Positions 23,701 through 24,608 are shown, counted from the first letter of the stretch. The stretch is DNA of 64,000 nt from Macrostomum lignano (GCA_002269645.1 NIVC01001150.1:62001-126000), one strand, 5' to 3'. Notes: a model not told the origin generated them from the sequence alone. Translations and numbers: made by a program.

Positions 23701-24608
23701 ATATGGAATGTGTCAGTGTGTGAGGCAGGAGATATGGAATGTGTCAGTGTGTGAGGCTGGAGATGTAAAGGTAGTAGTCTATTGGGGCTGGAGATATAAA
23801 TTTCCTATATACATGTAATATAAAATGCCTTGTCAATTCCTAACAGTGGTAGGGTGACAGCCTCCATCCTCCTTGGCCCTCGGCCCCTGAAATGGTTCCA
23901 GAACCGCCTTGACCCGCATTGACCCGCCGCCCCCTCCCCCAGGTGTGGTTCCAGAACCACGTTGACCCGCCTTGACCCGGCCCCCCACAGGTGTGGTTCC
24001 AGAACCACGTTGACCCGCCTTGACCCGCCGCCCCCTCCCCCAGGTGTGGTTCCAGAACCACGTTGACCCGCCTTGACCCGCCCCCCCCAGGTGTGGTTCC
24101 AGAACCACGTTGACCCGCCTTGACCCGCCGCCCCCTCCCCCAGGTGTGGTTCCAGAACCACGTTGACCCGCCTTGACCCGCCCCCCAGGTGTGGTTCCAG
24201 AACCACGTTGACCCGCCTTGACCCGCCCCCCCAGGTGTGGTTCCAGAACCACGTTGACCCGCCCTGACCCCCCTCCCAGGTGTGGTTCCAGAACCACGTT
24301 GACCCGCCTTGACCCGCCCCCCCCAGGTGTGGTTCCAGAACCACGTTCACCCGCCCTGACCCCCCTCCCAGGTGTGGTTCCAGAACCGCCGGGCAAAGTT
24401 CCGCAAGATCGAGCGCGCCAAGCAGCAGCAGCAGGGCGGCGGCGTCTCCTCCAGCGACGTCAAGGACGCCATAGTCGGGGACGGCGGAAGCTCAGCCGCG
24501 GCCGCAGCTGCAGCAGCGGTGGTGGCGAAGTGCGAGATCGCGGCCGACTCGACCCTGGGCTGCGACTCGGACGAGTCCCGCGACGAGGACGGCCTGATGT
24601 CGGATTGA
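20773..24608 (+). CDS. Phox2: Paired-like homeobox protein Phox2, 3 exons, with an apparent 1-nt frameshift in exon 1
   Basis: N-terminus MDYPY (cf. MDYSY). Homeodomain [50 protein letters not shown]|[15 protein letters not shown] is diagnostic of Phox2. Exons 20773..21138, 21555..21940, 24372..24608; canonical intron between homeodomain residues 46 and 47; YKL motif at the start of exon 2. Confidence 0.95.
21956..22969. repeat. (GATA)n microsatellite, about 250 units, in Phox2 intron 2
   Basis: Nearly uninterrupted AGAT tetramer beginning ~15 nt after the donor at 21941. Confidence 0.99.
23513..23765. repeat. 31-bp minisatellite in Phox2 intron 2
   Basis: GGAGATATGGAATGTGTCAGTGTGTGAGGCT, about 8 copies. 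Confidence 0.95.
23889..24371 (+). repeat. 45-53-bp tandem array of the Phox2 intron-2 acceptor plus first 16 nt of exon 3
   Basis: Unit (C)nCAG|GTGTGGTTCCAGAACC-ACGTTGACCCGCCTTGACCCG. Copy starts at 23943, 23991, 24044, 24091, 24144, 24189, 24235, 24280, 24327; true exon at 24372. Confidence 0.95.

Follow-up and report, generated by a model that had tools for sequence, protein, structure and literature searches.

In the flatworm Macrostomum lignano, the acceptor that closes intron 2 of a Phox2-class homeobox gene is the last member of a tandem array, in which the splice site and the first bases of exon 3 are reiterated nine times inside the intron. We read this array as a young, copy-specific minisatellite across the intron 2/exon 3 boundary, which is probably neutral to mildly harmful and buffered by polyploid redundancy. 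Most likely, it arose as a side effect of a genome that is highly prone to repeats and was recently triplicated, and does not serve regulation.

The gene lies on the plus strand of the window—the whole 64-kb stretch of contig C1150 that was analysed. The species follows from an intronless HSP70 of this assembly, which along its full length matches M. lignano entries at 98% identity, with about 84% for the next best matches; the assembly contains no mitochondrial genome from which COX1 could be read. Exon 1 (20773–21138) opens with the ATG at 20773 and has the donor CAG|GTAATT; exon 2 (21555–21940) encodes homeodomain residues 1–46, ends in ...TEARVQ, and has the donor CAG|GTGGGT; and exon 3 (24372–24608), which is purine-rich from +17, encodes residues 47–60 and a C-terminal tail up to the TGA stop at 24606–24608. 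Two AATAAA signals follow in the 3′ UTR on the same strand (24755 and 24818). The encoded homeodomain is complete (Pfam PF00046, positions 1–57 of 57, E 1.9e-23), and its best match among solved structures is human PHOX2B (8p7g, E 2.7e-32), with aristaless/ALX4 ranking lower. Among the best 120 database matches, the majority of named proteins are called 'paired mesoderm homeobox 2A/2B(-like)'. Intron 2, 2,431 nt in length, splits the homeodomain between residues 46 and 47 (ARVQ|VWFQN, window 21940|24372), and a barnacle Phox2 gene has an intron at the identical position with one acceptor. By these matches the gene is assigned to the Phox2 class (paired-like, Q50), and the Pfam hit, the PHOX2B structure match, and the conserved 46/47 intron uphold the name that the sequence-only reading had given it. 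A protein search with exons 2 and 3 (proteins of 113–360 aa) found no entry for M. lignano Phox2, full-length or truncated, and a literature search found no paper pairing Macrostomum with phox2. The top-scoring database match, a Phox2 model of the tick Hyalomma asiaticum, has the exon-2 segment (residues 1–46) doubled in tandem and lacks helix 3, which is probably an annotation or assembly problem of that record.

The array occupies window positions 23893–24387 (Tandem Repeats Finder: period 45, 10.3 copies, 89% matches, score 657) and is built of units of 45–53 bp. A 19-mer, CAGGTGTGGTTCCAGAACC, occurs exactly 10 times within the window, from 23940 to 24369 (0 expected, 100 shuffles), and the last of these copies is the true intron 2/exon 3 junction; the site that spans the junction and is reiterated is the acceptor. 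The array opens with a founder unit (23893–23945, plus strand), which consists of a degenerate TGGTTCCAGAACCGCC, a TTGAC-type tail, and CCCCCAG. No AG precedes this founder, and it gives the first decoy its branch motifs and pyrimidine tract. Nine decoy units of 45–53 bp follow on the plus strand (23940–24371), each with CAG|GTGTGGTTCCAGAACCACGTT, branch-like motifs of the (T/C)TGAC or TTCAC type, and a C-rich tract. Their exon starts lie at 23943, 23991, 24044, 24091, 24144, 24189, 24235, 24280, and 24327, ahead of the true start at 24372. In decoys one to nine, ACGTT leads into TTGACCCGCC-type tails that close in the C-rich tract and CAG, and the tenth copy runs on into GCCGGGCAAAG, which is exon. 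All nine decoys bear a GCC>ACG change together with 24 identical bases, within which zero substitutions are found.

The 3′ end of exon 2 (...GCCCGCGTTCAG) gives GTGTGGTTCCAGAACCAC when joined to a decoy, and AACCGCCGG / GTGTGGTTCCAGAACCGCCGG when joined to the true site. In silico joining of exon 2 (end 21940) to each decoy yields the reading VWFQNHV(D/H)PP-stop, with the in-frame TGA 31–33 nt past each decoy start and with decoy 24327 carrying the variant residue relative to the other decoys; the sole site that continues the homeodomain in frame is 24372. The decoy-joined product would keep Pfam homeodomain positions 1–51 of 57. Nine near-perfect acceptor copies upstream of exon 3, each with this reading after joining to exon 2 and with the tenth alone continuing, had been claimed before; the exact CAG|GTGTGGTTCCAGAACCACGTT in nine units and the in-frame joining confirm both points. 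Genome-wide, the homeobox junction motif has 71 matches and clusters at just two loci—the arrays on C1150 and on a second contig, C2547.

For an assessment of splice competence, sites were scored by U1 duplex energy, by pyrimidine content, and by comparison with acceptors of the same genome. Between −23 and −4, the decoys have a pyrimidine content of 0.70–0.80, compared with 0.80 at the true site and 0.75 at the intron-1 acceptor; further M. lignano acceptors that sit at this point of a homeodomain, likewise C-rich, reach 0.50–0.75. YTNAY branch-like motifs are found at −13 to −31 for every site. Decoy 24280, for which a CTGAC motif and tract in common with the true site had already been noted, differs from that site at only 1 of 30 upstream bases, and both CTGAC and CCCCCCTCCCAG are indeed shared. 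By these measures of sequence, nothing marks the decoys as weaker than the true site. The sole clear difference between decoys and true site lies downstream of +16: from +17 to +76 the purine content is 60% after the true site versus 37–42% after the decoys, and the true exon body is rich in GAR/CAG triplets, whereas the sequence after the decoys is intron-like. RNA pairing that could loop out or hide the decoys was also looked for, and intron 2 holds no inverted repeat of at least 14 nt.

The full window is collinear with C2547 (about 105–158 kb) and with C140 (about 155–212 kb), and genome-wide the locus has these three copies and no fourth. The number of decoys is nine on C1150, nine on C2547, and zero on C140. 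The long and short unit variants of the C2547 array are ordered as in the window array, with one extra TTGACCCGCC, one unit 10 bp longer, and some C-runs that differ by 1 nt; parts of the flanks diverge by 1–5%. On C140, the founder stands directly before the true exon with no decoy in between (aaaTGGTTCCAGAACCGCC, 37 nt, CAG|GTGTGGTTCCAGAACCGCCGGG), and a 16-nt direct repeat (TGGTTCCAGAACCGCC) is present once in the intron and once at the start of exon 3, 53 bp apart. This copy is exactly the founder plus the true exon, which bears out the suggestion of the sequence-only reading that the degenerate copy at about 23893 marks the origin of the duplication.

The Phox2 ORF is intact on C2547 (329 aa) and on C140 (328 aa, protein 98% identical). 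Between these two coding sequences, dS is 0.048 and dN/dS is 0.14, and the homeodomain is identical in protein sequence despite three silent changes. The copies can be distinguished by silent changes in exon 2, some 50 nt ahead of the junction, with CGT GAA on C1150 and C2547 versus CGC GAG on C140. In exon 1 of the window copy, a run of four C at 21046–21049 stands where C2547 and C140 have five, and because of this 1-nt deletion the window copy is frameshifted after about residue 91. The short run may be a homopolymer consensus error of a PacBio-era assembly or a true null mutation, in which case this copy may be dead already. Exon 2 of the window copy has in addition a private Thr>Lys change (MDGK versus MDGT).

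Across the window, identity among the three copies is a mosaic. From 13 to 43 kb, most 600-bp windows show 99.7–100% identity between C1150 and C2547, which falls to 91–99% over the first 10 kb. Over about 2.5 kb (window 3.6–6 kb), C2547 equals C140 at 100% and C1150 differs by 1–4%, and at 1–3 kb, 7.8 kb, and 43.8 kb all three copies diverge. This pattern suggests recombination or gene conversion among copies that are described as genetically isolated, or else chimeric contigs. That C140 might be an old paralog was considered and is ruled out by the collinearity of all 64 kb in three contigs and by the mosaic identity. Collinear, mosaic copies fit the published structure of the genome, in which 70–85% of the Mlig_3_7 assembly exists as three paralogous copies. 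These have been interpreted as three subgenomes, one being the small chromosomes and the others two diverged variants of the large fused chromosome (PMC10733133). SNPs separate the M. lignano copies at a rate of 2.2%, or 1.1% within coding sequence (PMC10733133).

A simple path could lead from the C140 arrangement to the array. Slippage or unequal exchange between the two 16-nt repeats, 53 bp apart, would create a hybrid unit with the acceptor and the first 16 exon bases in front and an intronic tail behind. This unit would then have gained the GCC>ACG change and been amplified to nine copies. The nine decoys share this change and the 24 identical bases, and therefore descend from one mutated unit. 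Moreover, these 24 bases are unchanged in nine decoys despite the ∼5% silent-site divergence of the copies, and hence the array is younger than the C140 split or was recently homogenised. The comparison covers three M. lignano copies, and the difference may reflect a gain on C1150 and C2547 or a precise loss on C140 by the reverse exchange. As for the output of the gene, productive mRNA would come mainly from the exon-adjacent acceptor 24372—the only one that precedes the purine-rich exon body—and decoy use would be a leak yielding ORFs that end in VWFQNHV(D/H)PP-stop. On the analysis as a whole, 24372 is most likely the main acceptor. Any loss of output would be buffered, because every worm also has a homeologous copy that lacks decoys and whose protein is 98% identical.

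The surroundings of the gene are very rich in repeats. Of the window, 43.6% consists of tandem repeats, which form some 25–30 distinct arrays with units of 10–71 bp; genome-wide, simple and tandem repeats account for 15% of the M. lignano genome (PMC5730564). Three further arrays lie in Phox2 itself, all on the plus strand. An (AGAT)n microsatellite of 1,021 bp and about 256 copies (21949–22969) begins 9 nt past the exon-2 donor; a 31-bp minisatellite of eight copies (23511–23764) precedes the acceptor array in intron 2 by about 130 bp; and a 17-bp repeat of 3.8 copies (24663–24727, Tandem Repeats Finder) lies in the 3′ UTR. All three vary in length among the three copies of the locus: (AGAT)n is about 370 bp on C2547, the 31-bp minisatellite is about 1 kb on C140, and the C140 3′ UTR has a single cctgtaaaatattt motif within the stretch read. 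A minisatellite at Phox2 hence needs no special explanation in such surroundings, and only its landing place is unusual.

Other readings of the array have to be weighed against this one. The decoys might be used efficiently, either because ten equal sites compete or because the first one is preferred. The array-bearing copies would then be hypomorphic or null and make mainly a product truncated in helix 3, as an early case of homeolog silencing after whole-genome duplication with C140 supplying Phox2. The pyrimidine tracts and branch motifs of the decoys do match the true site, down to the single difference in 30 upstream bases at decoy 24280, and the first decoy is the one expected to win under 5′-to-3′ scanning or a first-come rule. 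As a recent polyploid, M. lignano has redundant copies, a clean and intact third copy is present, and the window copy also bears the exon-1 frameshift and the private T>K change. However, the C2547 ORF is fully intact, the dN/dS of 0.14 indicates purifying selection between copies—though, with an array so young, decay might not be visible yet—and the precedents favour the exon-adjacent site. The exon-1 indel, moreover, may be an error, since it affects a homopolymer and the assembly is PacBio-based. We consider efficient use of the decoys rather unlikely, yet the strongest of the competing explanations. A less probable variant starts from the same splicing event and lets the array largely correct itself. 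Exon 3 begins with GTGTGG (Val-Trp), and because of this the joining of exon 2 to a decoy regenerates a donor, CAG|GTGTGG, which could be spliced again, acceptor by acceptor, down to the true exon. For pairing of the regenerated donor with the U1 5′ end, the energy is −7.6 kcal/mol (exon-1 donor, −8.1; exon-2 donor, −12.2; consensus, −14.0), and 92–429 nt downstream of eight among the nine decoys there are acceptors with branch motifs of their own. With U1 pairing near that of the exon-1 donor, re-splicing to a later acceptor is thus conceivable for these eight. The last decoy, however, is 45 nt from the true site, which is probably too short for an intron, and GTGTGG deviates from GTAAGT at +4 and +6. 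Known recursive splice sites serve very long introns, whereas intron 2 has just 2.4 kb. In human cells, the exon junction complex is reported to repress re-splicing of such regenerated donors, which counts further against this route; we regard it as improbable.

The sequence-only reading had also proposed that the copy number is a tunable dial, selected to set full-length Phox2 against a truncated isoform, dominant-negative or degraded by nonsense-mediated decay (NMD). Each decoy does provide a defined ORF that keeps homeodomain profile positions 1–51 of 57, and copies with the array coexist with one that lacks it. Yet the decoy count is equal on the two copies that bear the array, so that no graded series is seen, the locus sits among dozens of unrelated minisatellites, none of the 71 motif matches in the genome reveals a further reiterated homeobox junction, and barnacle Phox2, with its identical intron, has a single acceptor. 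The decoy stop would lie in a terminal exon, where NMD of the exon-junction-complex type is not expected, and a homeodomain without most of helix 3 would be unlikely to fold or to bind DNA. The equal nine decoys, the 43.6% repeat content, the clean C140 copy, and the lack of a conservation signal do not sustain the proposal, which we judge very unlikely. Least probable of all, and barely credible, is that noisy long reads were misassembled in a way that produced or lengthened the array. Mlig_3_7 was built with Canu from early PacBio reads of a repeat-rich polyploid, and 1-nt C-run differences between the array copies and the exon-1 homopolymer indel are of the kind such reads might leave. The nine-decoy structure, however, with matching unit order, is found on two separately assembled contigs that differ in their flanks and in other array lengths, and an array assembled twice on contigs distinct elsewhere argues strongly against an artefact. 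The assembly is known for substantial redundancy, and 38.8% of M. lignano genes are trans-spliced (PMC5730564).

Going by its sequence, the Phox2 array is an acceptor-side mirror of donor-side junction minisatellites. Such donor arrays that span the junction are known from human genes, namely F7 IVS7 (37 bp, 5–9 copies), IFI6/6-16, CBS IVS13, LMNB2, and PDGFA (PMC1557585). The exon-adjacent donor is used in F7, LMNB2, and PDGFA, and IFI6 and CBS also use two pseudo-sites; the paper also cites work on a human globin gene whose donor or acceptor had been tandemly duplicated, where the proximal copy alone was used, while another group obtained the opposite result (PMC1557585). As in the F7-type arrays, the terminal unit of the Phox2 array straddles the exon–intron boundary, the authentic site is reiterated identically inside the intron, and the pseudo-sites are competent by sequence. 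The F7-type arrays are polymorphic, and here the number is nine, nine, and zero among genomic copies. Unlike them, the Phox2 array reiterates an acceptor with the authentic site last, whereas in the donor arrays the authentic site is the first and most upstream. Further differences are its place within a homeodomain, its occurrence in a flatworm, and its presence on just two of the three subgenome copies. A full-text literature search found no precedent for an acceptor-side junction minisatellite.

The nearest acceptor-side case is SETD5 c.568-31_568dup, a 31-bp duplication of the exon-8 acceptor, in which the downstream, exon-adjacent site is used (RNA-seq) and which is benign (PMC9912651). 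There, too, a duplicated acceptor competes and the upstream site would give a premature stop. The SETD5 duplication, however, adds one copy and not nine, duplicates almost no exon sequence compared with 16 nt here, and is a rare variant, whereas the Phox2 array is fixed on whole chromosome copies. Of the two alternatives left by the sequence-only reading, skipping of nine sites by the spliceosome would be the one that agrees best with these precedents. The Phox2 sites further resemble the recursive sites (ratchet points) of Drosophila and vertebrates, in that a pyrimidine tract and CAG abut GT and a donor is regenerated on splicing. Known recursive sites are near GTAAGT, single in very long introns, and conserved. 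The Phox2 sites differ from these in that GTGTGG is set by Val-Trp codons and that they are 45–53 nt apart in a 2.4-kb intron. As for NAGNAG and close tandem acceptors, neighbouring acceptors compete for one donor. Those sites are 3–18 nt apart, share a branch point and a pyrimidine tract, and usually give in-frame isoforms. The Phox2 sites, on the contrary, are spaced by 45–53 nt and thus beyond the ∼18 nt of this class, each has its own tract and YTNAY motifs, and each decoy has a truncating frame.

In a handful of human genes, donor-side minisatellites have served as natural models of authentic-site choice. In these F7-type arrays, scanning and exon proximity predict one and the same winner. 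In the Phox2 array, the first-met and the exon-adjacent sites lie at opposite ends and the two models predict opposite winners, so that site usage would separate them. It is doubtful, though far from negligible, that decoys are used in vivo and turn two of three Phox2 copies into hypomorphs or producers of a helix-3-less protein, or that the array is crossed by serial re-splicing at CAG|GTGTGG. In either case, the array would be a natural test of 5′-to-3′ scanning versus exon proximity. If the decoys are used, splice-site reiteration would be a one-step route to the divergence or silencing of homeologs, and it would show that in a repeat-prone neopolyploid a single mutation can disable or alter a homeolog that encodes a key neuronal transcription factor. 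If the decoys are silent—the likelier outcome—the array would be an ordinary neutral repeat in an unusually awkward place. M. lignano offers working transgenesis (PMC5730564), and the array-free gene on another subgenome is an internal control in the same worm.

Some further observations concern the wider locus. By its position, the (AGAT)n array is near enough to the exon-2 donor that it may matter for splicing or transcription. Other tandem arrays of the window include a 7.7-kb array of a 20-mer at 46835–54504 and a 3.2-kb array of a 29-mer at 27362–30609, and array lengths across the window vary strongly among the three copies. Outside the locus, a lone CAG|GTTTGGTTCCAGAAT at C606:154636 and C3902:20647 reads VWFQNHNVSTP-stop, similar to a decoy. 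It was rejected as a related structure, as no homeobox sequence lies upstream, and is probably a chance match or an old relic. A dispersed repeat at window positions of about 19300–19900, ∼900 bp upstream of the Phox2 ATG, has dozens of genomic copies at 66–90% identity, which often come as two or three near-identical matches, as three subgenomes predict; one of its minus-strand ORFs resembles a fragment of a retroelement protein. An intron-containing gene of the HSP70 family (C1150:145139–146965) lies about 20 kb past the end of the window, at ∼60 kb downstream from Phox2; it has a collinear counterpart on C140 (221867–223693) and an HSP70-family match on the same side on C2547 (94143–94643). 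Elsewhere in the genome, at least 17 HSP70 ORFs (∼640 aa) are intronless.
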